NCBI GenBank assembly: GCA_050084985.1
Contig: JBITNC010000001.1
Coordinates: forward strand, 189,472,001 to 189,536,000
DNA length: 64,000 nucleotides
Origin: Nageia nagi
Taxonomy: Eukaryota > Plantae > Pinophyta
Direction: 5' to 3'
Below, one piece after another: positions 33,091 through 59,880 of the stretch. How positions within the stretch are numbered: position 1 is the first letter of the stretch; each line of letters begins with the position of its first letter. The translations under genes were made by a program, and so were the position numbers. Below the pieces are notes generated by a model that was not told the DNA's origin, searched no databases, and was given only the letters and a program-made list of their open reading frames with translations.

Positions 33091-34939
33091 TTGGAATATT
33101 ATAATACCTCATGACTAAGAAAAGATTGATATTCTACTAGATCAAAAAATAAGTATAAATTTTTAGCTTCTTGTATGATGTGATGAAACGATGGTATGGG
33201 ATGGGATTTGTATATGTATGTATATACTAACCTATAGGTGGCTATTTTAGTGAGATTAATTTTATTATTTTTTTTATTTTAAGGAAAAAGTATACCAAAT
33301 AGAGTTAAAATCAAAGGATAATCTATTTCAAATATTTAAAAATACTTGTAGAACTGTTGGCTATAATGATCAATAATTAAAAAAAAAAAAACTTATCAAA
33401 TTTTGGCATTAATATGGGAACGATTATGGGTTATACTAGCTAAATAAAAAATTATAAATCCCAAATTATAGCCACAATTATCCAATTAGTCCACTAAAAT
33501 TTTCCCTTCCTAAAAATGGGGAAGTGTTTAGGGAATACCTAGCAGTTTGGTATATTCTTTGCAATGGTGGTATCTATGGATTCATTGATTTGCTTTAGGG
33601 TAATAATGAAAATTGGTGTCAATAGGTAGTGGACTCATGGGATGAAGGTTGAGTAACCATAGATGGGAAATAATTCACTATTATTTCAAGTTTGATTACA
33701 ACAACTACGAGCATGGTAAATGAAGGAATTTGACACTCTAGGGATGTGTGGACTTCATAGAAAGACATAAAAAACTTTCTTAATGTGGTGGAACTTATGT
33801 CAACTAAGTGGAAGTCAAATTATTTGGTTAACTCCCTATATTATCCATGGAATAGTGTGGTGGTTGCTCTATGTAAGCTTTTCACTCTAGAAGGGCATCA
33901 TTCTGATGTGGGGGCCTACCATTTCATGTTGATGGATCATTTTCGAGGTAAGCTTCATGTAAATTTTTATTTTTTCCTATATCAGTCTTTATATTCTTAT
34001 GTTCATAGGAATAAAGGGTAAATATTTATTCACCAAGGCCTTATCAAAATCTTGGTAGGCTTTGCCCATAGTAGGGTCCAAATTGTAGCCCCTCTAAGAC
34101 AAATTCCATTGATTCCCCACCCACCACCTCAACCACCTTTGCCTCATCCACCTCCACTACCCTCTCTTAACCTACCTCCCCCATCACCTCCTCAAGCTAA
34201 CCTTCCATATGCTATTTAATTATCCCATTCATCCCTATTCTCACCCTCTATTACCCCTTCTACATATGGTGATCATTTCCTCTAATTCAAAGGAGTCAAT
34301 TAAGAAGTGGCAAAAGTCCTAGCCTCCTTGGGTAAGTTCAAAATCAAATCATAATTCCAATGAAAGAACCATATTAGAATATTGTTTTATAATACTCTAA
34401 GGACCACCCTAAGGAGATGCAAAGAACGAAGAATAAATAAAGTTTAGCTACTTTCTTCCCACATAGGTAGGATTCATAGCTATAAATTTTTGGAGATCTC
34501 ATGTAGTACATCAAACTATTAAGCACATTTATGATGAAGAGTGAGATTCAAGAGAAACACTATAGAAGTTAAATAGAATGAGAACTACCATCAAGATACT
34601 ACTAGAGGGTATCCCATTAACTAATAATCCTAAATCAAAAGAGAACATAATCAAGGCTAGATGGGATTTCTTGGATAAAATCAAGACTACTATGGTTAAG
34701 GAAAGATAAATCATGGAGATGGATACTTTTACATATGTTACTTATCCATACTCTTTTTTTGGTTATCGTATATGGTTAGATACTCATTTTGAGTGTGGAA
34801 GTGAGATGTAGGCTACTATAGTTTCTCACATACTAAATGGTATATCATTATGAATTTTTTGTAAAAAAAGTTTTTTGGGCCCTGTATAAAAAACCATTGT
34901 TAATTTATAAATTTAGCTTTTATTAAAAAATAATTTTTC

Positions 34940-36335
34940 ATCAATTATTATGGTCTTGAATGCTTTGATAGAAATGTATGCAAAATATGGAAGAATAGAA
35001 AAGGCCCAAGAATTGTTTGATAAGATGCATGTTGCAAAAATAGTTTCATGGATTGTAATGATTAGAGGATATGTAGTTCATGCCTACAACAAGGATTACC
35101 TTAAGCTATTTGGTTTTATGAAGCACTTGGTAACCAACCCTAACATCATAACCTTTGTATGTGTTCCACTTGCATGCAACCATGCAAGTCTGGTGGATAA
35201 GGGCTGTAAATACATTAAAGTTAAAACATGGTCTAATTCTAGCCAAAATAATCCTAGTATTTTTATCCATAGATAGTGCAAATTTTGCATCATCCTATAA
35301 AGAAATTACTACGTAGAATTTGGGCCCACATGATTGATGTAAATATGGGCATAAGATAATATAATGATTCTAAATAAAATGAATGCACAAATTGATAAAG
35401 GTAAGAGAAAAGTACAATTAAGAGTTTCTTTTCTCCCTTTATACCTTTGTACTAGGTTACTTGTAAGCTCTTCTCTAATGATGAAGGCAAGAGAAAAGTA
35501 CAACTAAGAGTATTAAAAATAAGGCTTTCACAAGTACCCCATCAATATAGATTACCAATTACATTTACTTGATAATATGATGTCAATAATCAATAATAAT
35601 ATCTATTAGTACAAATATTTAATATCAACACTTTATAAAATAATGAAATGAAACATGGTTTCTTTTCTATCTAAAAGCATATACCATGTCATTATGCAAG
35701 ACTATTTATATATTCCATTACTTTGCTTTCACCAATAATTTCCATAATAATATTCTCCATGTTTAAAATGATGGAATCAATTCACATCCCTCACAACAAT
35801 GTCCCTTGTAATAAACTTAGAGATAAACTTGATCGCAGTATGGTATTCATTGCATACTTAAAGGTTCTTCACAACTCCAATAGTGGTTCCAAGGGCATTC
35901 ATTAAAAATCCAAATGCAATTATGAACTTTTCACTATGCTAGCAGAGAAATAATTATTTATTTTTAGCCTCCACATCATGCAACATAGGTATTGTATTTG
36001 GAATATATCTCTTTGCATTATTGACCTTATTGGTAGAATAGGATGTATTGAGGAAGCTTTGAACTTCATTGTCAAGATTCCCATAAAACCCAAAATTGAA
36101 GTGTGGAGGTGTCTACTTGGTGCTTGTAGATCATATAAAAATTTAGGAATAGGATAGACATGTATGCAAAATATGTAAGAATAGATAAGGCCTAAGAATT
36201 ATTTGATAAGATGCATATTGCAAACACAATTTTATGGATCGCAATGATTAGAGGGTATGCAGTTCATGCCTACAAATAGAATTCCCTTAAAATCTTTAGT
36301 TTAATGAAGCACTTGGTAATAAACCCTAATATACA
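34940..36335 (+). pseudogene. PLS-class PPR gene fragments (S-P2-L2, S2-E1, then S-P2 again) split by AT-rich DNA
   Basis: NALIEMYAKYGRIEKAQELFDKM..VSWIVMIRGY..ITFVCVPLACNHASLVDKGCKY; 36013-36153 CIIDLIGRIGCIEEALNFIVKIPIKPKIEVWRCLLGACRSY. Confidence 0.9.
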
Positions 36336-36479
36336 TTCTAAATACACCATTGAAATCGCATGCAACATATTTAAAGCACTAAACTTTGAACACATCCACA
36401 TTATTATCATCGTCAAAATATCATCAAAATATATTAATCATATCCATAAATTAATATAATAAAGTCACTATCAGGGTAT

Positions 36480-38270
36480 AAAAATATCATCATAAGTTCA
36501 TCAAAGTATCCATATCTTTAATTAGCCTTAGGCTCACCATTAGGAAATCTAAGGTGATCATTCTATTGGTCACTAAGATCATCATCATCATCATCATCAT
36601 CACCATGTTAATGAATAACAACATGAGTACCAATTTCAAGGGGACCATGAGCAAAAGCATTATCAAGGGCACCATCATCACTAGAAACATCTCCTATCAA
36701 CACTTGCAAATAATCCAAAAAAATGTTAGTAAAAATAAAAACTATTAAATTGTATGCATACTAATTTATGGCTAAAATAAAAGTAGTAATCACTTACTCT
36801 ATTATCCACAAAATGTTATAACTTTTCCCACCCCTCGTGGACATCGTAATCCAATTATCCATTTATTGGTTTATGATTATATGTTTCCACCTACAAAAAA
36901 GTAATGGTGTGGGTTAGTGATAAGATGAACCACTTGGAACCAACTCTAAGAGTCTTGCACAATGACATGTTGCATGCTTTTAGGTAGAAATAAAACTAAA
37001 ATATTATTAGCAAAATGGGTAGCTAGGATGATACTCACAAAGAGGCCTTCAATCCTCTATTTTCCTATGCTTTTAGAATGGAGTGGATTAAATTTTCTTG
37101 ATGCTTTGAAGTGAGAATGAGATGCAAGATCTTGTGGTGATTCTTCTTCGAGACTCCTAGTATAGTGTTCTTCTTTTTCCTCCACTCTCTTCACCAAATT
37201 CATGTATACTTCCTTGAAAATAGTGGATTTTCTTTTTGTAATGGAATGTTTCTTAGGTGGAACTATTTTAATCCCCTATATCACTTTGTTCCTTTTCCTC
37301 TTGATGCTCATAGGCATATATTTCAACATTTATTTGATGCTCCATTTATCTCTGAATTGTCCTTAAAATTGGAAGATCAATCTATTTTTTACTACAAGTA
37401 CATACTAATAAAAAATTAGTTTCAATTTTTTAGCATATAAGTGTACAAGGTAATACACTATTGTTAATAAAATATAATTAAATTTACATACCTTTCTTAC
37501 TATGATTTCTCCATGGTTTATCCAATGTCTTCTAAAAATTAGTGCAAGTGGCATTCCTAATTGCTTTAGCAAATAGGAGCCTTGAATAATAACCATTTCA
37601 AACATTAGTAAACTAATAGAGTGCAAAATTGTATATAGAAAATTTATTTCTATGGTGATAAAATTTTACTAGATTCATCGAAAAGAACTTCACTATCGGG
37701 TTTCACTTTAATCTCAATTCCTTGTGATCCAATGCAAGTGATGTATTTTGGAGGTTACTTTACTAAAGTTATAGTTTCTTAATTTACTAAGATATATTAG
37801 ATACAATGTAATATTAATAATATAATAAACATAATATTTTTTTAATAATTTATTAGAACATAATAATTCAAATTAAAAAAAGGAACTTATCACGGTGGCT
37901 AGACCCCTTTGAATGATGTCCTCATCTACATCATCATCACCCTTGATGGCTTTTGCTAACCGTTTTTGTGCATCAGGGGGAAAATTCCTCATGCCTTATA
38001 TAAATTTTTTAAAGCTTTCAAACTACAAAAACTTAAAAAAAAAATTATATGCCTTATGAAATGAAAATCATAAAATAAATAACATTAATATTATGTTAAT
38101 AATTTAAAACATATTGATACTTACCCACTTGGAACCAAATTTTTCATTAGTAGTCCTTTCACTAGTACTTTCATTTCTTATTTCAATAGTTCATCTTCTC
38201 TTTTGATTCTTTGTACTGTATGTCTCTATAAGTTGGTCCATCATGATGATGGCTACTAAAGAGAAAATAA
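36480..38270 (-). pseudogene. Degenerate multi-exon gene, possibly CACTA TnpA/ORF2-like
   Basis: Coding-like acidic and K-rich blocks alternate with AT-rich blocks carrying minus-strand donors (GGTAAGT ~38125, GGTATG ~37492, GTGAGT ~37038) and TTTTGTAG acceptors; no diagnostic motif recognised. Confidence 0.35.
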
Positions 38271-38274
38271 CAAA

Positions 38275-41163
38275 TATATGTGAGTCTATCTTAAATATCA
38301 TGAGTGAATCTTTTTGCATTATTCCTAGGATGAATCATTACACATGTATTGTTGAACTTCTTTCCCATGTAGGCTTTCTTAAGGAAGCTTTGAAATTCAT
38401 TGCCAATATGCATGATGCAGTTATAGTTTCATGGACTATAGTGACTGGTAGCTAGATATGAACAAAATATGGAAGCATAGAGAAGGTATACAAATTGTTT
38501 GATAAGATGCATGATGTAGACATAATTTTATGGAATGTAATGATCACAGGATATGCATAAAATTAGTTTTCTAAAAAGGATCTATAGAATTTTAAGTAGA
38601 CGTAATTGTCAAATATAAAGCCACAATTTGTAACCTTTGCTAGCATTTTTCCAAAAAGGATTCCCTTAATTTATTTGATCTGTTGAAGTACTTGGGGACC
38701 ACCCATGATAGAATAACCTTTGTATGTGTTCTACTCACATGCATCCATGTAGGTCTAGTGGATGAGGGTTGTAAATACTTAAATAACATAAGTGAATCTT
38801 ATTTTATTATTCCAATGATAAATCATTACACATGCATTTTTGACCTTTTTTTTCATGCAAGCTATCTTAAGGAATTATTTGATAAGATGCATAATGCAAA
38901 CATAGTTTTATGGAATGTAATGATCACAAGATATGCACAAAATGTGTTTTATAAAAAGGCTCTAGATACTATTAAGTAGATGCAATTATTAAATGTAAAG
39001 CCAAACTCTATAACCTTTTCCAGTAATCTTCCAGCATGTGCCACCATAATATCTCTATAAGAAGGTATGGACATCTGTTAGAGAGTAGTTGAAAATGGTT
39101 TTGTAGCAAATGTGGTGGTTGTGAATACCTTGATAGGCATGTATGAAAAATGTGTAAGCATAGAGAAGGCTCCTAAATTGTTTGATAAGATGCATAATAT
39201 AAACATTATTTCATGGAATGCAATGATCATAGGATATGCACAAAATGTGTTTTTTTAAAGGCTCTAGATACTTTTAAGTAGATGCAATTGTAAGATGTAA
39301 AGCCAAAGTCTGTAACCTTTGCTAGCATTCTTATAGCATGTGCTACCAAAGGAGATTTATAAGAAGGCATGCACATCTTTCAAAGAGTAGTTGAAAATGG
39401 TTTTGCATCAAATATTATGGTTGTGAATTCCTTGATAGTCATGTATGCAAAATGTGGAAGCATAGAGAAGTCTCTTGAATTGTTTGATAAGATGCATAAT
39501 GAAAATACAATTTCATGAAATGCAATGATCATAAGATATGCACAACAAGTGTTTTTTGAAAAGGATTTGGAGACTTTTAAGCATATGTAATTGTCAAGTG
39601 TAAAACTGGATTCTATAACCTTTACCAACATTCTTACAGCATGTGCTAGAGATCTCGAATGTAATGATTATGATATACAATTCATGACTACAACAAGGAT
39701 GCCCTTTAAATTTGATAAGATGAAGCACTTAGAACCAAATCTAATAGCATGACCTTTATATGTGCTCAAATTACATGAAGCATTATTCCTAAGATGAATC
39801 ATTATACATACATTCTTGACCTTCTTGGTCATGTAGCCTATCTTGAAGGCACTTTGAACTTCATTTTTAAGATGCCCATAAGACCTGAGTTGGATGTGTG
39901 GATGTGTCTGCTTGGTGCTTATATATCACATAACAATGGGATAAAAATTTGTGGAAATAAACCTTTTTTTCTAGATCCTAAATATATTCCATCTTATATT
40001 CTTCTTTGAAATATTTATGCTTAAGTGGATAGTTGGGATAATGTTTAAAGAGAAAGGACATTGATGAAAGATAGAGGAATCAAGAATACACCTTAATGTA
40101 GTTGGGCTAAAGTTGAAGAAAGGGTACATGCTTTTCTTATAGGATACATATCACACCCATAAACACGACAACCAAGTTTATCTCCAATTTTATTTTTTCA
40201 ATAAGTGTTATTATTAAATATATACACAAATAGATAATGTTGTTATTAAATATTTTTCTAATACGTGCTCTTTCAAATATTTATGTTGAAATGGGCAGTT
40301 GGGATGATGTTTAAAGAGTTAGGATATTCATGACATATAGAGCAATCAAGAAGACTCCTAGTTGTAGTTGAATTGAAGTTTATGCAATACTTAGGTGTAA
40401 AACCCAACTCTGTAACCTTTTCCAACATTTTTTTGACATGTGCCACTATGGGAGCTCTAGAAAAAGGTATGGATATCATTTAAAGAGTAGTTGGAAATTA
40501 TTTTTCATCAACTATTCTAGTTGTGAATGCTCTAATAGACATGTATGCAAAATTTGGAGGAATAGATAAGGCCTAAAAATTATTTGATAAGATAAATGTT
40601 GGAAATACAGTTTCATGGACTGCAATTGTTAGAGGATATGCAGTTCATGGCTAAGGTAAGGATTCCCTTAAAATATTTTATCTGATGAATCAATTTGGAA
40701 TCAACTATAACAAGATAACCTTTGTATGTGTTCAATTTGCAGGCAACCTTGCGAATGAGGGTTATAAATACTTTAATAGCATGAGTGACTTATTACATTA
40801 TTCTTAGGATGAAATTATACATGCATTGTTGACCTTATTGGTCATGTAGGCTATCTTGAGGAAGCTTTATAATTCATTATCAATATGTCCATAAAATATT
40901 GAAGAGTTTCATAAACTACAATAATTATAGTATATGCATAAGATGGGTTTTCTGAAAAGGCATTAGAGACCTTTAGGCATATGCAATTGTTAGGCATAAA
41001 ATCTTACTCTCTAATGTTTTCCAGCATTCTTTTAGCATGTGCACAATAGGAGCTCTAGAAAAAGGTATGGAAATCCATACAAAATTAATTGAAAATGGTT
41101 TTAAACTTAAATTTGTGGGTATCAATTCCCTAATCAACATGTATGCAAAATGTGGAAGAATCT
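38275..41163 (+). pseudogene. Main PLS-E/E+ PPR pseudogene cluster with internal deletions and duplications
   Basis: Repeated P-L-S triplets, HYTYILDLLGHVAYL..MPIRPELDVWMCLLGAY (S2-E1), *CSWAKVEERVHAFLIGYISHP*T (E2/E+) ending ~40165, second run 40310-41163; many stops; no DYW seen. Confidence 0.93.
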
Positions 41164-42129
41164 AAACCCTAAAATCCTAAAACTTTGGGCATTACTATTA
41201 GGGGTAACACCCCTAAAAATTGAAACCAAACCAAACCATTCCAATAACAAAATCAAACCACTTCAATCATAAATTCATGAAAGGGAGTGCATAATTCAAG
41301 TCCAACTATCTAGCAGGACATCATTGGACTCCAAGTAAGTACCACTTCTGCATTGCTTAGATTTATCTAGGGTTTTTCTTGGAAATATTGTATTATCATG
41401 TGCATTTTCCATCTAGACTAGTTTCATAAGCTAGAGACTAGAAAATATAATCAAATAAAGCTAGAGGCTACAAAACTCTACATGCAATTGTAGAAAACAT
41501 AACCAAATTGAGAAATGAACAAAAAAATCTACCTCCAACTATAGAAAATCATCCCTTGGGTTGATGGCTCTCCCTCTTTCTCCTCCTCACCTTGCAAAAT
41601 TAGTATTCAAGCTCAACTGTTGAGTGAAAATGATAGTTCAAGCATGTTATTTTTTTTGAGGAAAAATTAGATGTTATATCATATGTCATATTGCATCTCA
41701 TATCATGTATAGGTGAGCATTGAATATAGCATCTTTTGATATATTAATAGGGAAAAAAACCATTTTGTTATATTTTATAGATATTCAATAGTAATTTATA
41801 GATATACAACAATCGTACATAGAAAAAGTTTATAAATATTCAACAATAGTAAATATGTTTGCTAGAACTATCATCTAAGAGTCACCGTAGTTGCCACCTT
41901 GTAAAGGGGTGTGGGTCTATTCAAAAGACAAACAACTACTATACATCTCATCTCTAATCCTTAGAGCTACAGCTTTAAGCATCAATGCATTATCGTTGTG
42001 TTCTTCATTATTATATTTTATTACTAATACTATTATTACTAATATTCTTATTAATATTAATAATTTTATTTTATAAAAAAATTAATTATTTATTTTATTG
42101 TTATTATTATTATAAATATTAATAATATT

Positions 42130-43160
42130 AGGGGTTAGGGTATGTGTTAAGGGTGACGGTATGAGGTTAGGGTCAGGGTGCAGGGTTAAGGTATTGGTGT
42201 AGGGTTAGGGTTAGGGTCTAGGGTTAGGATGATGGTATAAGGTTAGGGTTAGTGCAAAAATAGGGTGATGATGTAGGGTTAGGGTCAAGGTGTAGGGTTA
42301 GGGAGTTCAAGTCTCATAATCCCTTAAATATGATAAACATGATGTATCTTACCAAGCTCTTAGGCATGTGATGTACATCTTGGTGTTAGTCATCATGGAT
42401 TATGGATGCCAATGAAACTGCCTATAATGATTAGATTTTATGTAATTCATGGTTAGGATTAGGGTACCGGTTAGGATGCAAGTTATGATGAAGGGTTTAG
42501 GGTTAGGTTTAGGGTTTATCAAATTATAAAGAGCTTATCCTAATGATATTATTAACTCTTAAATAAATTTCATATTGAGCTCACAAAACACCAATATGCA
42601 CTTCCCCATTATCACCCATCATATTTAAGGGACATGTAAATCTTCTAATTGATGGACTATTTCTCACATCATTGGGATAATTATATCCAACATATAACTT
42701 ATAATATTCATGATCTATCTTAAAATAAATTTTTGTGCAATGTTTGAGCTCAACCATACCAGTTTAGGGTTAATGGCTTAGGGTTCAAGTTAGGGTTTAG
42801 GGTTTAGGTTAGGGTTCTAAGATTAGGTTAGGGTTTAGGGTTAAGGTTTTAAGGTTTAGGGCTTAGGATTTATGGTTTAGGGATTAAGTTTGGGTTTAGG
42901 TTTAGGGTTTATGGTTTAAGTTTAGAGTTTAGGGTTTAGGTTAGTATTTAAGTTAGGGTCCAGGGTTTAGGTTAGGGTTAAGGGTATAGGTTAGAGTTTA
43001 GGATTAAGGGTTTAGGTTTTAGGTTAGGATTTAGGTTTTAGGTTAGGGTTTAGGTTTTAGGTTAGGGTTTAGGTTTTAGGTTAGGGTTAAGGTTTAGGGA
43101 TTAAGTTAGGGTTTAGGATTTAGGTTAGTGTTTAGGTTAGGGTTTCTATTAGGGTTTAGT
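42130..43160 (+). repeat. Degenerate interstitial telomere-like arrays (TTAGGG/TTTAGGG/TTAGG)
   Basis: Blocks at 42130-42303, 42450-42517 and 42760-43160; 19-bp higher-order unit TTTAGGTTTTAGGTTAGGG at ~43010-43090. Confidence 0.9.
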
Positions 43161-43161
43161 A

Positions 43162-43290
43162 TTTTTTATAAGATAACTTAATTTTTATAAGATAACTTAA
43201 TAATCTTTTTTATAAGATAACTTAATTTTTATAATATTAGGACTAATTTTTTATAATATTATGACTTCAATTTTTAGAATCTTACGAATT
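43162..43290. repeat. 19-21-bp AT-rich tandem repeat
   Basis: TTTTTATAAGATAACTTAA x3, then TTTTTATAATATTA(G/T)GACT variants. Confidence 0.8.
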
Positions 43291-43523
43291 AATTAAATTA
43301 TTTATGTATTAATACATGAAACCCTATACCATTGACCCTAAACTCTAAGTCAATATTTTTAACCCTAGTTTTTAAAATTTTAATCATAAACCCTAACACC
43401 TAAAACCCTAACTCTAACAAATAAGATTTAATGCCCTAAACCCTTGATTTTATTTATATTTAGAGGAATGTGAATTTTAGTGTGACTAATAATATATTAT
43501 TTTTTAAAAGTATATATATCACT

Positions 43524-44700
43524 ATGTCAACTACTAATGATGAGTTAGAAATCATGTCATTTGTTCATCCATCAAGGTTTGACATTTCTTTTGATGAGGA
43601 TAAGCTACCCCTAGAGCCCTCTCCTCCTAGGAGTATTGATAATTCTTTTAATGATGATGACCCATAGGTATATGTTTTTAACAATGAGTGTCAATATATA
43701 TGTATTTAAATTTTATTTCATTAAGAATAAGGTATATATAATATCATTATATGAAATATTTAACTAATTAATAGTATATTAATTGTTATAGGAAAACCAT
43801 GATGATGATGATGATGGTGATGATCATGATTGTAAGGTAATTAACATAAAATTTTTAATTAGTTTACAATTTAATATTAAACATAACTAAAATTAACTAG
43901 GTCACACAAAGTTTCATGACTAAATGTTCAATTCACATAAAGTAAATTATATAGATCCATCAAATGAAGAGGTAACAATACATAGAAGAACTAGATATCA
44001 AACATAAATTAAAAATGTATTTAGAAGTGATTATGGTATTAAGCCTTTTTCATTTGATCTACCTTTAGATAATTTGTGTGATCCTCCATTTCCTATTGAA
44101 GACCAAAATTTATATCAACATACATATGATTAGAAGCTATACAGTGCATGGTCAAAATAAGATCCATTTCCAAAAGCTTATGCACCATACAAATATTATG
44201 GTAATAGATACATGACAAGAGAATTTGAATATATATATATGGAGCTAGCATGGGTTTATTCATATTAGATTATGTGTTTATTTATTGAGGTGTTCTAAAA
44301 GATCCATTGATTCCATTTTATGGGCCAATTTATAGTAGAAAAGATTATCTACAATTAGCAAATAAGGTAGCATTAGAAGCTATAGTATTTTTGCAAATTG
44401 GCAATCAAACCCCAAGCCTTTAAAATGTTTGTACATGGATAGTAGGCCAAAGATAAATTAAAACATTATAGGATATAAAAAGTTTCATTAGCATTGGATT
44501 CCTCCCAAATTATGAACTTCATCATTTTGAAAAGCAGAAAGAAGACTTCATGCATGAAGAGTTAGATAGTTATCTAGGAGTAGTTCCTATTAGAAGTTTG
44601 AAATGTGGTGACAAGCTATTAGTGGCTTACGATTATAAAAAAACAAAACATAAAGCAAAAAAGTCAAAAAGGATTAAAAATATTATCTTTATTGATGTTT
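43524..44700 (+). pseudogene. Degenerate SET-domain (lysine methyltransferase fold) gene, ~3 exons, acidic N-terminus and Lys-rich tail
   Basis: Across ~3 frameshifts 44235-44637 reads IYGASMGLF..LIPFYGPIY..SYSI..LYMDSRPKIN*NIIGY..FLPNYE..YLGVVPIRSLKCGDKLLVAYDY, all SET motifs in order; putative introns 43668-43791 and 43837-43954. Confidence 0.78.
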
Positions 44701-44919
44701 TTTCATGAAATATCTATTAATGTATATATTTTCATAAACTTTTAATGAAAATATTGTGTAAATCCTATTGATGAGCTATTATTGCAATACGCTTGTTCGC
44801 TTATTACTAATGCAATACACTTGTTCATTTTTTAATGATAATATTATGTTTTTTTAGATTGTTTTAGTGTTATATAACAACTAATTTGAAAAATATATTA
44901 GAATGCAACAAATATATAG

Positions 44920-47131
44920 GACAACTCTAGCACAAGGACTTATGTACCTACTTTGCATCAACTACATATAAGGAAAGCTTAGAGCAAGCAACTACATGCA
45001 CTCTTAACTCCTAAAGAATATGGACATTGGTTGAGTGAACCAAATGTTGTACTAGAACTTATATTCAATAAGGATATGGATTTAGATACCAATAATAATG
45101 AAGGAGAGAATAATGATGTTCATTTAGATCATGACAAATTAATGAATGATTTTATTGAGTTAGTCTATGCAAATAAATAAGATGATGCATACGCTCATGC
45201 CTCTAATTCTCATACACATGATGGTGCAAATGATGGTGATTTTGAAAATTATAGCTTGTACAATGATGCAAAAAGCAAATTATATAAAGGATCATGCTTA
45301 TCCAAGTTACTGATGACCCTACTTTTAATAAATTTAAAAACCAAATATGGATGGCCAGATACAAGTTTTACTACTCTTCTAAAGTATGTACTATTTTTCA
45401 ATATTGAAATATATACAAATTTATATATTATATTTTTTGTATTTTTAATATTTAAGATAATAAATTTATTTCTTTGTGTGGTACTATAGATTACTAAATG
45501 AACAGGTGATTCTAGATGATAATGTCATCCCTCCTTCATGTAGAAAGCCATGTACATTTTTGAAGGATACAAGGGTAGAGTATACAACATACCTTGCTTG
45601 TATTAATGATTACATATTCTATAGAGGACTATATAAAAAAATGAGCACATATTCAAAGTGTGATGCAATTAGATATGAAAAAGGAAAGAAAGAAAAAAAA
45701 TATTCCTCAAAAGAAAGTTTTTCATATGCCAATCATTCCTAGTTTTTCATATGCCAATCATTCCTAGGTTAATGCAATTATTTTGGTATAAGTCACTTGC
45801 ACAACTTATGGATTGTCATGCAAGATATAGAATTCAAGATGATGTAGTTTGCATTCCTACAAATAGTAAAGCAATGAAACATATAGAGACAAAGTGGCAT
45901 GATAATTTTTAAGTTGACCCTAGGAGTGTTAGATTGGGTTTAGAAATGGATGATGTCAATCCATTTTGGAAACAATCATCTAATTATTCATATTGGTATA
46001 TTATTATAATCAATTATAACTTACCTCTATGGATGTCTACAAGAAAAGAGCATTTGATATTGGCTCTCATAGTCCCTGGAAAGCATTAAGTGAAAAACAT
46101 AGATATTTACCTTGAACCAATAACTGATAAATTGATGCTCTAGTGGGAAAGAATTTAAATGATTGATATATCTAGACCTATCCAGTAGAGATCATTCAAA
46201 TTATATGGTATACTATTTTGGACTATACATGACTATTCAGGGCATACTATTTATTCAAGTATGCATATATACAATATTTATCACTAATGCATATTAATTT
46301 AATATTTTTTATTTTTTATTTTACCATATGATTAGTTGTGCATTATTTAATAAAAATTATTATAGGTTATCATGCTCATCCGTGACATACCAAAAATCTC
46401 ACAACAAGATATTCGAATCAGATGAGGAAGATGGAATACCTTGACCATATAAAATATTTTCAAGTGGGAAATAAAATATGAAAAAATAGAAATTATGATA
46501 AAATTGATTACACCCCATTCCTCATTGTGCAACTCCTATTTATTTGTCAATAAAGTACCAACAAAAAGTGGAATAAGTTAGATAAACATCCCGTGAGGAA
46601 GGTGTTATTGTAAGTCCAAATGATGATATTATTATTAATGAAAATGACTTACCCATAGGTGAGATTATTATTGGTGAAAATATGCATGTCTATTATATTT
46701 TAATTTTATTATTTTACTAATTATATTATGATTAATTTTATACATGTTTTCAAGCATGAAAAAGCTATCAATATTTTATAGACTTCCATACATGTCAAAC
46801 TTTTTAGTGGCATATTTGATGGATCCTATGCATAATGTAAAGAATGTAACATCTTCATTGTATCAATTTACAACAATGAAAGAATTAATGGTGATACAAT
46901 AAGAAATGATATAAAAAAATCTAGATAAAGTGTTCATAATGGATAGGTCAAAATGAATATAGAACACCAAATGTACCTGCTCCCACATGGCTTATGAAAA
47001 AAGATGAAGTAGAGAAGTTACACAAAGTTGTTAAAACCATTGGAACTATGGACCATCTCTAATAAGATCATTCACTACCAATGGTAAACTTAAAAGATTT
47101 TAAGTCTCTTGATTTTCACAACTTCATGAAG
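44920..47131 (+). pseudogene. tnp2: CACTA/En-Spm Tnp2 (TnpD, Transposase_21) pseudogene, intron-containing, 3'-truncated
   Basis: LYKGSCLSKL..NLKTKYGWPDTSFTTLLK; ACINDYIFYRG; DPRSVRLGLEMDDVNPF; NYNLPLWM..LALIVPG..NIDIYLEP; WTIHDY; SIFYRLPY..DPMHNVKNV; FKSLDFHNFMK. Confidence 0.95.
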
Positions 47132-47174
47132 GTATTGATCTCATACTATATATTTATTGGTGCATGTGTGATTT

Positions 47175-47840
47175 TATCCATAAATCCTGAATTGGGTGTG
47201 TGCATATGTCTCATTCATGTTTGTAAATTGAATATTATGATTTGTGCAAGCTATATTGAGGGAGCTTTGAACTTCATTACCAAAATACCCATAAACCTTG
47301 AATTAAGTGTGTGCATGTATCTACTTGGTTCTTGTAAGTCGAATGTTGTGGTTTGAGAAGGTTACCTTAAGGTAGATTTTAACTTCATTTCCAAAATACC
47401 CATAAACCCTGAATTTGGTGTCTATATGTGTCTACTTGGTTCTCATAAATTGAATGTTATGATTTATGCAAGCTATAGGAGCTTTGAACTTCATTTCCAA
47501 AATACCCATAAGGCAAATAAAGTTTCATAGACTGTAATAATTGTGTGATACACAAAATGGGTTTTTTAAAAAAGGCCCAAAGACTTATGAAACATGTGGA
47601 AGAATAAAATAAGACCTAGTATTTATTTGATACTATGCATGATGAAAATATGGTTTCACAATCTATAATGATTGTGCGATACACAAAATAGTTTTTCTAA
47701 AAAAATCCCATAGATATATGAAATATGTGGGAGAATACACAAGACCCAAAATAAGTTTGACAAAATGCATGATGCAAACATAGTTTAATGGTCTATAATA
47801 TTTTTAGGATTCATAGGTTTTCTGATGAGGCATCAATTCA
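47175..47840 (+). pseudogene. Short reiterated PPR fragments (S2/E1 junction ~3-4 times, S-P twice)
   Basis: SYIEGALNFITKIPINLELSVCMYLLGSC and repeats of AACTTCATT.CCAAAATACCCATAA; FDKMHDANIV. Confidence 0.8.
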
Positions 47841-47849
47841 TCATTTAAT

Positions 47850-49037
47850 TTTGTCAATCCTGAGTTGGTGTACAAGGCTATATGCAGTTGAGGACTCTGT
47901 TTTATCCCTTGTTCTACTTGGAAAATTCAAATTTCAATCATACAATAATGCTAAATTCAGACTTGCAGGACTTAAACTGGAAAGATAAAGTTGCAGTAAA
48001 CTGAAGGAAATGGAGAAAACACACACACTAAGCTGCTATCGAATACTTTGCAGAAAATTGGAAATTGACATGAAACAAATAAGAGACCTCTACCAGTAGG
48101 AGTGGGCCCCCTCTTCCTAGTAGAGACTCACAATTAAACATAATGTTAAAGAATTGTCACACCTTTTTATTGCTTTTCCAAATGAACTAGTATAATTTAA
48201 TTACAAAAGCTAGTCCTTCCTCCTCCTTCTTTCTGTCACTAAGTCTCTATTTATTCTAATAGGCTCATTAATGCTTTTTAACTAATCATTCTAAATATAT
48301 ACTACTTGACCTATTTATTTGGGTCATACAATCCTTCTTATCCTACACTGTTTGCTAATATTCTGGATATAATTCTGTAAAGATCAAGTCTAAAATAGAA
48401 TTAGTTACTTTGTCCTTAAGACTAGTTCCTAATTGGAATAAGTCTACTTGACTTCTTCTCTAGCTCCTCTAGTTTCTCTAACTGATCCACGTTCTTCTCT
48501 GTCTTCGATGTAGCTGTCATCTTAGCTTTGTGCGTCTGATTCTTCTATATTTCTGGAGCTATAATTCAGGAACCTTTCTGGAGCTATATTTCAGGAACCT
48601 TTCTAGAGCTACATTTTAGGAACCTTTCTGGAGCTACATTTTAGGAACTTTTTTGGAGCTACATTTTAGGAGCCTTTAAACAGTTTTTGGAGCCAAACTT
48701 AAGTCGCTTTTTGGAGCTAGAATGAAGTCACTTTCTAGTGCTAGTCTGAAGTTGCTTTCTAGTGCTAGACTGAAGTCGCTTTCTGGTGCTAGACTAAAGT
48801 TGCTTTCTAGTGCTAGACTTAAGTTGATTTCTAGAGCCAGACTAAAGTCGCTTTCTGGTGCTAGACTAAAGTTAATTTCTGGAGCCAGTCTTAAGTTGCT
48901 TTCTGGTGCTAGACTTAAGTTGATTTCTGGAGCTAGACTTATGCTATTTCTGGAGCTTTCAATTAGATTACTCTAGAGCTAGAAACTTGATACTTGCAAC
49001 CATCATTCTTATGAGAAGTTAGAATATGTGCTCAACA
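47850..49037 (-). mobile_element. Less-decayed LTR-like insertion
   Basis: Retains CAG/CTG and several CpG; ends GTGCTCAACA; stem-loop at 48083-48129; left end and TSD not resolved. Confidence 0.5.
48551..48980. repeat. Two adjacent minisatellites, ~26-bp x5 and 24-bp x~11
   Basis: TTCTGGAGCTACATTTTAGGAACCTT, then TTCTGGTGCTAGACTAAAGTCGCT. Confidence 0.92.
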
Positions 49038-49559
49038 AACATTATTCAAACATAAACAGTAATTTTTTTCATGCATCAAAATTACAAATAACATTAATAA
49101 ATGAAAGATCAAACAAATATGCATTCAACATTAAATTAGATAGTTTATAACAATTAGTAATATCATTCAAGTCATATTAGTGTTCCAAATGTCTTTAAAA
49201 CATCAAATAAATGCATCAAAAATGAGACCATTTTGAGTCTCATCATTTTCTAAAAGAATGCATAAAAATTCAAAGCATGGACATATATTGCAGAATGTAG
49301 AAGAATACAAGCTCATGGATTATGGAAGAATATTGCAAGGTCATGAAATAACATACTTGCTTGCACTTCATATCCTCTCCTCTCACCTCGTCAATACACC
49401 AAATGCCCCTAAGTGCCAAAATACTCATAAACCTTGAATTGGGTGTGTGTATGTATCAAATAAAAATAATAGTTTTATGTTTATCATGTTTTATGTCCCA
49501 TTTCATTTTGCATTCATGTATCTCAAGTCTTATGTTCCACTTCATTTTTTTTTCAAAAA

Positions 49560-51160
49560 GTGTTACTTGGGTGTATGGATGTGTCTACTTATTACTTGTA
49601 AATCAAAATATTTTTGTTAGCAAAAATATAGAGCATATTTGAATAATTCCATATCATATGGTATATCAGCATCATTTTAGACCATATATGGTGTAATAAG
49701 ATCATTTCATATCATATGTTGGTGTATTTGGATTATTTTATATCATATGGTGCATGTTGGTGTATTTAGATTATTTTATATCATATGGTGCACTTGATCA
49801 TGAACATATGTTGGTGCATTTGGATAATTTTATATCATATGGTACATTTAATTATGAACATGCCTTTATCTTTCATCATTACATATATATAAATGGTGAC
49901 TGGTCAATTCTATTAGACCATCCTTTGATAGCCCATGGCCAACATCATAATTTGGCTAACTTTGATTGAGCTTAGGTGCCAAATACCCATAAACTCCAAA
50001 TTGGGTGTGTGTATGTGTCTACTTGGTGCTTTGTAAATTGAATGTTATGGTTTTGAATATTTGGATAGACATGTATGCAAAGTGTGGAACAATACTGAAG
50101 GCCCATAGATATGTATGCAAAATATGAGCTCTAGAAGAAGGTATGAACATATATCAAAGAGTAGTTGAAAATGGTTTTACCTTGAATATTGTGGTTGTGA
50201 TTGCCATGATAGACATGTATGTAAAATGTGAAACAATACACAAGGCCTAATATTTATTTCACAAGATGCATGATATGATATTTATACTTGGTGCTTGTAA
50301 ATCAAAATGTTATGGTAGCAATACTATGGAGCATATTTAAATCATTTGAGCATAATTCATGATATTTTGAATAGGTTATCCTAAGGAGAAGATATTTTAT
50401 TGAGTTAAGATAACATAACAATTTAAATTTTTGACTTGAACAATTGATGAGTATTACAAGAATATTTTAGCCAACTATATCATTTATGGTTGTATGGTGT
50501 ACTTAGATCAATTTAATATCATATGTTAGTGTATATTTCATATCATATGGTATATTTGCATTATTTTAAACTATATGATGTATTTAGATCATTTCATATC
50601 ATATTTTGCACTTTTCATTTCATATCATATGATATAGTAGCATCATTTCATACCAATATGATGTAATTAGATCATTTCATATCATATGTTGATGTATTTG
50701 GATCATTTTATACCATATGGTACACTTAATCATGAACATATGTTGGTGCATGTGGATTATTTTATATCATATAGTGCACTTGATCATGAACATATTTTGG
50801 TGCATTTGGATCATTTAATATCATATGGTGCACTTGTTATTTCATATCATATGGTACAATAGCATCATTTCATACTGATATAGTATAATTAGATCATTTC
50901 ATATCATATGTATATGTAATTTGGATCTTTTTATATCATATATGGTGCACTTGATCATGAATAATATACGTTGGTGCAATTGGATCATTTTGTATCATAT
51001 GGTGCACTTAATCATGAACATACCTTTATCTTTCATCATTTGCATATTATTATTATTATTATTATTAACTATGACTAGTCAGTTCTATTGGGTCATCCTT
51101 CAGGAGTCCATGGTGGTTATCATAATTGGGTTCACTATGATTGAGCTCAAGTACCTTTGG
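49560..51160 (+). repeat. Duplicated module: PPR E1 fragment, ATCATTTCATATCATATGGTG satellite, unique tail
   Basis: 49560-49980 and 50280-51160 share flanks; arrays at 49640-49860 and 50490-51020; PPR fragments at 49980-50320. Confidence 0.8.
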
Positions 51161-58500: not shown

Positions 58501-58724
58501 TACACCCTCTTATTTAGGTATTATTTGTCATAGTACCTCAACAAACTACTTTAAGGAGTAACTTTGTGTCTTACCAAGGCTAACAAGTTCCATTTTCTAC
58601 TTGTATTATTCAATTTACCCCCATGACTCAATTTCTTATTCCAGGAACTAAAGAGGTTTCTACCCCTATCTCCCACATTGACACCACCAAATTATATGCA
58701 TGGTATAATCTGTAGTCCTAGATC

Positions 58725-58797
<73 letters not shown>

Positions 58798-59880
58798 CTT
58801 GAGATTTTGACCTCTATACCTCCCTCTGTTATCATAAAAATAATAAAATGGGGCACAAGTATCCTACCCTAGCAAGATAGAAATAATCTAATATTTCAAT
58901 CAACATTTTTTGTTGTCTCTGATGTTACAAGGCTACAGATCCTATATTATAAGGAGGCTAAAAAAGGAAAGTGTTTGAAAACAAGGCTATAAGCCTCATA
59001 AATAAGGTTAAGGTCCTTAATAATTAAGTAAATTCCATCAATGAATCATTGAGCAAGGATCCTAATAAGGTAACTGTACAACAAAAGAACCAATAGATTA
59101 CCTAAACCATGGAATAAATTAAAAATAAAGATAAAGAAATTACTACAATAAATAAGGAGTTACAAAAAATAGAGACAAAGAAAGAAAATTTTAAGAAATG
59201 CTTATCTCAAATTGAAGTTGACTTAGTGAGTCATAATTAGTAGATATACCAAAAAGAAACCCTATTGATAAGGAAGGATGCAAAGCTCAAATTAAGAGAC
59301 TCTAAGATATTGAAAAGGGAAACTCAGATTCAAGGGAAAGATGCATAAATCAAGGCCAAGGACTCTAAATTGGAGCAATATTAGGTCAAAAAAGAAAATG
59401 AAATTTGAAAATCAATGAAAAGTTCTACAAAAAGACCTTAAAAAGGCTAAAGAGGTCGATGGTAAAACTACTTTTCATAAAGAAACCTAAGCTGACTTGA
59501 AGAGCAAGTTCTAGAGGAATATATTTAAATAAATGAAGAGCCTCTTCCCCATTGAAACTATATTACCTCCTATCAAAATGCCATAGATAAGGTTTCCACT
59601 AACTTATCTCAAACAAAAGCCTTGATTGATATAAGAAAAGATGATGCAAAGGTTGTTATTACAAATTTGGAGATCATCTCTAATAAAGATTTAGCCATGC
59701 AAAATTTGGGGTCCCATGAGAAGATCTTGGATATGGCCTCTTCCATAATGAAAATAGATGCATATGTTGAAGAGGGCTCAGCATATCAAACTACACTTAC
59801 ACAAGAGATTGCCCAATCATAGCCAAATTCTAAAAGCTCCAATTAAAGTGAATTCTAGACTTTTGGGGGGCTAATGGAAG
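55590..59880 (+). pseudogene. Degenerate additional ORF(s) downstream of integrase (acidic, Ser/Pro/Thr-rich and coiled-coil segments)
   Basis: Coding-like composition, e.g. GTLFRLYEFLKKAYLFPYFVSNRVFSIEFYRQL, K/E heptad-rich 58990-59540; no known domain recognised. Confidence 0.5.
58728..58794. repeat. (AT)n microsatellite
   Basis: About 33 perfect AT units. Confidence 0.98.

Follow-up and report, generated by a model that had tools for sequence, protein, structure and literature searches.

The stretch of Nageia nagi DNA analyzed here (64,000 nucleotides of contig JBITNC010000001.1, positions 189,472,001 to 189,536,000 of the forward strand; hereafter the window) harbors, at 43.5-47.2 kb, what is probably the remnant, decayed and truncated at its 3' end, of a CACTA/EnSpm DNA transposon of high copy number, in which a divergent, minimal SET-type accessory gene precedes the Tnp2 transposase. 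A CACTA lineage with a minimal SET-type gene of its own, seen here in a dead copy, had been suggested by the original prediction; that proposal is sustained by a family-level sequence profile, by a gene order that recurs in three of the three sequenced copies, by thousands of contigs from public sequencing runs and by the open frame of the ancestral gene.

Relatives of the gene and linkage to the transposase

An exhaustive HMMER search with the window segment 44472-44705 returned three unnamed protein fragments (P0001-P0003) at 60-68% identity, and a metagenome scan with their alignment returned two DNA loci with a base composition like that of the window, L001 (1.3 kb) and L002 (17.5 kb out of a 23.7-kb contig). 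The N-terminal half, used as a query afterwards, added the protein fragments P0006-P0011. The ten protein fragments recovered in all, these included, fall into two subfamilies, the second and more distant of which is formed by P0009-P0011, from ENA/JGI contigs, at 37-42% identity. One member of subfamily 2 reads LYIDGHPRTNGNIVGFINSCSS; the motif GNIVGFINSC of this subfamily is closer to canonical SET than its counterpart in subfamily 1, and the subfamily includes an unbroken fragment of 144 aa on an 11.9-kb contig. No match was obtained in a word-index protein search with the window piece, by tblastn against plasmids, or when viral contigs were scanned with the family profile.

In the window, L001 and L002 alike, the SET-like gene, a spacer of ~0.2 kb and the start of Tnp2 follow one another in the same order, with 77-82% DNA identity among the copies (80.5% between L002 8346-12676 and window 42762-47176, 79% between L001 and window 43877-45192). 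The identity of the transposase is established by a Pfam match to PF02992 (Transposase_21, Tnp2) at 45913-46086 (E = 1.5e-17), with a second, weak piece at 46189-46284. In L002 the transposase runs ~1.5 kb past the point, at ~47176, where the window copy breaks into a PPR fragment. When the contigs of four public runs (X1-X4) were placed on window 43450-47200 at 80% likeness, 10700 were counted for X1, 9484 for X2 and 3543 for X3, representing three organisms (A, B and C) from two studies, and their coverage was gap-free over the SET part, the spacer and Tnp2 in all three. Each listed variant site in the SET part was seen in 40-80 contigs, similar to the part of Tnp2 outside its core. A fourth organism (D) yielded almost no contigs on the same interval; abundant in A, B and C and almost absent from D of the same study, the element family is therefore lineage-restricted. 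The SET-like gene co-amplifies with the transposase in constant order, and the recurrent linkage to Tnp2 that had been anticipated is present in each sequenced copy.

The degenerate telomere-like array upstream of the gene (Table 1) probably corresponds to the subterminal repeats of the element. At the far end of L002 (17438-17537) it reappears in inverted orientation, cut by the contig end, and the short block in the CCCTAAA orientation has its equivalent at L002 8501-9000. In L002 the SET-like gene and Tnp2 both lie between repeat arrays of opposite orientation, an arrangement compatible with CACTA subterminal repeats.

Homology of the encoded domain

The exons and pieces were searched one by one, the sole read-through being that of the last exon, with X at each broken codon. 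SET was the only Pfam family to match L001:546-776 (E = 0.018, 15.9 bits, profile positions 49-105 of 105). In the ESM-Atlas, 30 of the 30 nearest named clusters of P0001 belong to PF00856 (score 0.94, 170 shared features), and the structural neighbors of the Atlas model of P0001 are SET proteins too, at template modeling (TM) scores of only 0.46-0.49. A reference set was obtained by scanning viral contigs for the back-translated motif RFxNHSCxPN: the scan gave nine open frames, all nine recognized by Pfam as SET at 26-74 bits, seven of which were aligned as reference A7. By hhalign, the C-terminal half of the family aligned with these seven genes over 40 collinear columns (P = 5.6e-4). A full family profile, with the protein fragments placed on the codon-column translation of the three DNA copies (last exon only), reached a score of 31.9 against the verified SET genes (P = 2.8e-4, 56 columns), while 200 column-shuffled profiles averaged 11.9 (standard deviation 2.2, maximum 20.7, none reaching 31.9) and the reversed profile scored 12.4. 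Under permissive realignment, family columns 68-215 are collinear with SET residues 5-117, that is, with the whole domain.

The motifs kept in the family are GxxMGLF, PFCGPIY, (L/F)YID, PNYEF and GDELLVxYNY; PN is present, and of NHS the Asn is retained and the His is not. Judged on the profile comparisons, the SET homology of the family is well supported, and we hold it to be very probable. As to the comparison with the PF00856 profile by which the prediction was to be checked, the window pieces of the SET-like gene gave no match and the best single piece stayed below threshold; the family profile, set against the verified SET genes, scored well above the best shuffled one.

Structure of the window copy

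Translation of window 43500-44720 in three frames confirmed the gene layout that had been read from the sequence (Table 1). Every SET motif listed at the outset was found in its place and order: the copy shows GASMGLF, FYGPIY, LYMDSRPKIN*NIIGY, LPNYE and PIRSLKCGDKLLVAYDY, then the tail KKTKHKAKKSKRIK, whose lysine-rich character the translation bears out, and these follow the order of motifs in the family core, GxxMGLF, PF(Y/C)GPIY, LY(M/I)D, GNI(I/V)GY.N.S, PNYE(L/F) and GD(K/E)LLVAY(D/N)Y. No cysteine cluster was seen before or after the domain in the translated region of the window copy, again as proposed. The two small upstream exons are both present with AG/GT borders, the first acidic and the second His/Asp-rich; exon 1 closes with a TAG that only the window copy has (L002 reads AAG), and a GT comes next. 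The SET-like frame ends at 44706-44708 and the Tnp2 frame starts at about 44920 on the same strand, a gap of about 210-275 bp where ~250 bp had been estimated, and the assignment of the downstream gene to Tnp2 is borne out by the PF02992 match.

Table 1. Position of the features of the element copy in the window.
Feature	Position	Strand	Basis
Degenerate telomere-like (TTTAGGG-type) repeat array	42127..43154	+	Repeat families D1, D2, D6; homologous to L002 7496-8734
Short block of telomere-like repeat in opposite (CCCTAAA) orientation, directly before the gene	43300..43450	+	Sequence reading, motif density
Putative exon 1, acidic, ATG at 43524	43524..43667	+	Sequence reading, translation, copy comparison
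Putative exon 2, His/Asp-rich, reads ENHDDDDDGDDHDCK, AG and GT borders	43792..43836	+	Sequence reading, translation, copy comparison
SET-like gene, last exon, now with 5 stops and 3 frameshifts	44008..44708	+	Codon-by-codon comparison of three copies
SET-like domain core	44209..44637	+	hhalign against verified SET genes, Pfam, Atlas neighbors
Basic, lysine-rich tail, nuclear localization signal-like, stop codon 44706-44708	44638..44708	+	Translation
Spacer between SET-like gene and Tnp2, repeated and conserved to the same degree as both genes	44709..44919	+	Copy comparison, contig coverage
Tnp2 (TnpD-type) transposase gene remains, with introns; truncated at about 47176, PPR fragment beyond	44920..47176	+	Pfam, alignment to L002
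Perfect 25-bp tandem duplication, private to the window copy, shifting the Tnp2 frame	45718..45767	+	Sequence reading; single unit in L002

In one contig in each of two runs, 290 bases with GT..AG ends (window 44275-44566) are skipped inside the SET-like exon, which could reflect a deletion derivative or a processed copy, on thin support.

Decay of the gene

This copy is inactive today. The last exon carries stops at 44131, 44158, 44286, 44363 and 44459 and frameshifts near 44229-44236 (+2), at 44363 (-4) and at 44478 (-2); compared with the contigs of the public runs, the added TA near 44236 and the loss of four bases at 44363 are private to the window copy. With the 3' truncation of Tnp2, these lesions agree with the earlier description of the copy as dead. 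With G+C at 30%, a CpG observed/expected ratio of 0.11 across the whole window, an extreme depletion, and a TpG/CpA excess of 1.19, the window bears the mark of heavy methylation and deamination of the genome, which is why so many of the stops derive from C-to-T and G-to-A changes.

With the frame set by L001, nearly all stops and frameshifts occur in just one of the three copies, and the majority-state frame runs without a stop from 44008 to 44706 (~232 codons), the other two frames having a stop about every 10 codons. Since the lesions are almost all private to single copies and the majority frame is open, the common ancestor had an intact gene.

Alternative explanations

Several results weigh against a SET-type gene borne by a CACTA element, and some of those that concern the domain would also suit a lineage-specific CACTA protein unrelated to SET, with motifs that arose by chance. 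The window pieces of the SET-like gene match nothing in Pfam, NCBIfam or PDB, and the read-through row of the window scores 16.0 against a SET profile, inside the range of shuffled sequences; the window copy by itself does not prove SET homology, while the family-level case holds. No piece reaches the Pfam gathering score (the best 15.9 bits, the cut-off for PF00856 being 22.4 bits), and the other fragments gave no match. No SET chain was matched in the PDB profile searches, and the AlphaFold models of the C-terminal and N-terminal fragments, with predicted local distance difference test (pLDDT) values of 44 and 37, give no confident fold. The N-terminal half was uninformative in the Atlas search (score 0.78) and only weakly supported by hhalign (P = 0.04), whose match falls on the GxG/GLF motif as expected. 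Neither subfamily has the NHS histidine: Ser or Asn takes its place in subfamily 1, and subfamily 2 reads FINSC there; PR-type SET domains are likewise devoid of it. A chance resemblance, however, is at odds with the distance of the family profile from all its shuffled versions, with the collinear alignment to SET, with SET being the only Pfam match and with the unanimity of the Atlas neighbors, and we assign it very little probability.

Other points concern the element. Neither CACTA termini nor a target-site duplication were found at the array borders searched, in a copy that is 3'-truncated and heavily decayed by C-to-T changes. Moreover, the window and L002 share upstream PPR-array flanks (L002 707-2717 corresponding to window 36328-38281, and L002 6637-7373 to window 40899-41703), the shared upstream array and 2-kb stretch showing 74-82% identity, and one stop, at window 44363, is common to the two. 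Because of these shared flanks and this shared stop, the copies in the window and in L002 stem by duplication from a single insertion and are not independent events, and the PPR arrays held in common place the transposon remnant within a larger duplicated block. Homology extending so far beyond the element could mean that the block is not transposon-borne at all, and that segmental or tandem duplication multiplied a host locus in which the SET-like gene lay together with PPR arrays and a nearby CACTA remnant. We regard this as highly unlikely, in view of the thousands of contigs of 80-99% likeness in three organisms, which a transposon family fits better, and of the downstream flank of the window, which is unlike that of L002. 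Less improbable, and still unlikely, is a single transduplication of a host gene, whole or in part, in the manner of a Pack-CACTA, with the SET-like gene carried along as a functionless passenger. Plant CACTAs capture pieces of host genes, the SET-like gene has introns, and its copies show no signal of selection, their differences being spread without codon-position bias (34/33/34, 32/30/25 and 39/40/35) and their open reading frame identity (77-82%) equaling that of the spacer (79-82%). The differences in Tnp2 are just as even by codon position (72/68/69), in line with the remark that the two genes are similarly decayed: the copies of both now drift neutrally and, the outcome being neutral for the SET-like gene and Tnp2 alike, the codon-position test cannot separate a passenger from a functional gene. 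The only hint of selection on the SET-like gene lies in the two subfamilies, which keep the same motifs in spite of their 37-42% identity and therefore point to a long history and not to a one-off capture. A passenger of this kind is further contradicted by an ancestor with the complete open frame and its own start exon and tail, and by the lack of any host-like protein among the 1.84 billion representatives searched by HMMER. In addition, the least decayed member is still far from canonical SET (15.9 bits), unlike what would be seen had a host SDG gene been captured recently.

Comparison with known systems

A SET accessory gene has been described in Plavaka, a lineage of the EnSpm/CACTA superfamily, in the red alga Bostrychia moritziana, where PAG2 combines DNA methylase and SET domains (bioRxiv 10.1101/2025.02.11.637652). 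The likeness to the element of the window is that of a high-copy DNA transposon of the EnSpm superfamily with a SET accessory gene beside its transposase. In PAG2, however, the SET domain is recognized by Pfam and is joined to the DNA methylase domain (PF01555), whereas the SET-like domain of the window element is standalone and minimal, falls under the Pfam threshold and is devoid of the NHS histidine; the transposase is here the plant Tnp2 (PF02992), and the host a land plant. According to PMC12730594, which cites Kojima and Jurka (2014), Phytophthora has HarbingerS and MuDR families with a gene for a SET histone methyltransferase, and captures of SET by Helitrons are cited in bioRxiv 10.1101/2025.02.11.637652. 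HarbingerS and MuDR share with the present family a DNA transposon with its own SET-type gene and a presumed role with respect to host chromatin silencing, a likeness drawn from description and not from sequence; they belong to other transposon superfamilies and to another host kingdom. A SET-like passenger is thus uncommon, with precedent in HarbingerS, MuDR, Helitrons and the EnSpm lineage Plavaka, and the novelty first attached to a transposon-borne SET gene was overstated, such accessory genes being already published, one EnSpm-superfamily lineage included. No SET accessory gene in a land-plant CACTA was found in our literature search, and the present family would be, as far as the literature found goes, the first land-plant Tnp2-type CACTA with a SET-like gene.

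In domain size the family resembles the minimal viral and bacterial SET proteins (128-161 aa, viral contigs L004, L005 and L007), whose 128-aa form is equally free of pre-SET and post-SET cysteine clusters, and the motifs GxG-LF, xxG, ID, RFINHS-like, PN and ELxxxY are collinear in the two. It differs from them in sequence (~21-27% identity over aligned columns), in inserts of 4 residues ahead of PN and 10 residues behind it, and in the Ser or Asn found at the position of the viral NHS histidine. The remaining parallels are of concept only: the anti-silencing protein VANC of the VANDAL Mutator-like elements is a transposon-encoded factor acting on the chromatin of its own element and is not a SET protein, and SETMAR, in which SET is joined to a transposase, arose when a host gene took in a mariner transposase.

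Possible function

In an active ancestor, a telomere-like subterminal array, a small multi-exon SET-type gene and, ~0.2 kb further on, Tnp2 would have followed one another 5' to 3' on one strand. The ancestral accessory protein would have had acidic exons at its N terminus, then a SET-type domain, minimal and highly divergent, and finally a lysine-rich tail, probably nuclear-targeting, by which the protein may have been directed to the nucleus. There, on the grounds of its predicted domain, it may have acted as a lysine methyltransferase, with a histone or the transposase as substrate; alternatively, with the NHS histidine missing as in PR-type SET domains, it may have bound histone tails without catalysis. 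Either route could have biased the chromatin state at or around the element, to the benefit of the latter. The anti-silencing or target-marking role first suggested is conjectural. Few transposons have a gene of their own resembling a chromatin enzyme, and each of them is a natural experiment in the relation between mobile DNA and host silencing; the SET variant concerned here is itself unusual, being minimal and devoid of the NHS histidine. The value of the case is limited by the fact that all copies seen are dead, that the idea has already been published for other transposon groups and that the activity is a prediction from sequence.

En/Spm makes TnpA and TnpD by alternative splicing, and we may ask whether the SET-like gene and Tnp2 form one transcription unit as well, either sharing the acidic 5' exons by alternative splicing or with an in-frame splice from the SET-like exon to the transposase. 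In Tnp2, ~52-60 codons ahead of the first conserved Met are free of stops, with no ATG in that stretch in three of three copies, and candidate splice sites of compatible phase exist (AG at 44918-44919, phase-0 GT at 44688). The stretch was not found in any of the RNA runs searched. We consider a single unit rather doubtful. If it were true, in-frame splicing would equip an autonomous plant transposon with a natural SET-transposase fusion that could recognize or deposit a histone mark where the element integrates.

Surroundings of the element in the window

Arrays of PPR pseudogene fragments lie on either side of the element remnant, at window 34900-41161 and 47177-50300, and also at L002 1-6500. 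At window 41161 the upstream PPR unit ends exactly at the start of a CCCTAAA-type motif (ATGTGGAAGA followed directly by ATCTAAACCCTAAAATCC); this junction, present in L002 too, is a possible old insertion boundary. Two adjoining tandem arrays occupy window 48525-48677 (period 25 nt) and 48636-48971 (period 24 nt), and the 24-nt array translates, in one frame, into repeats of the peptide SARLKLLSGARLK. At window 58707-58813 there is a long palindromic microsatellite of (AT)n type.

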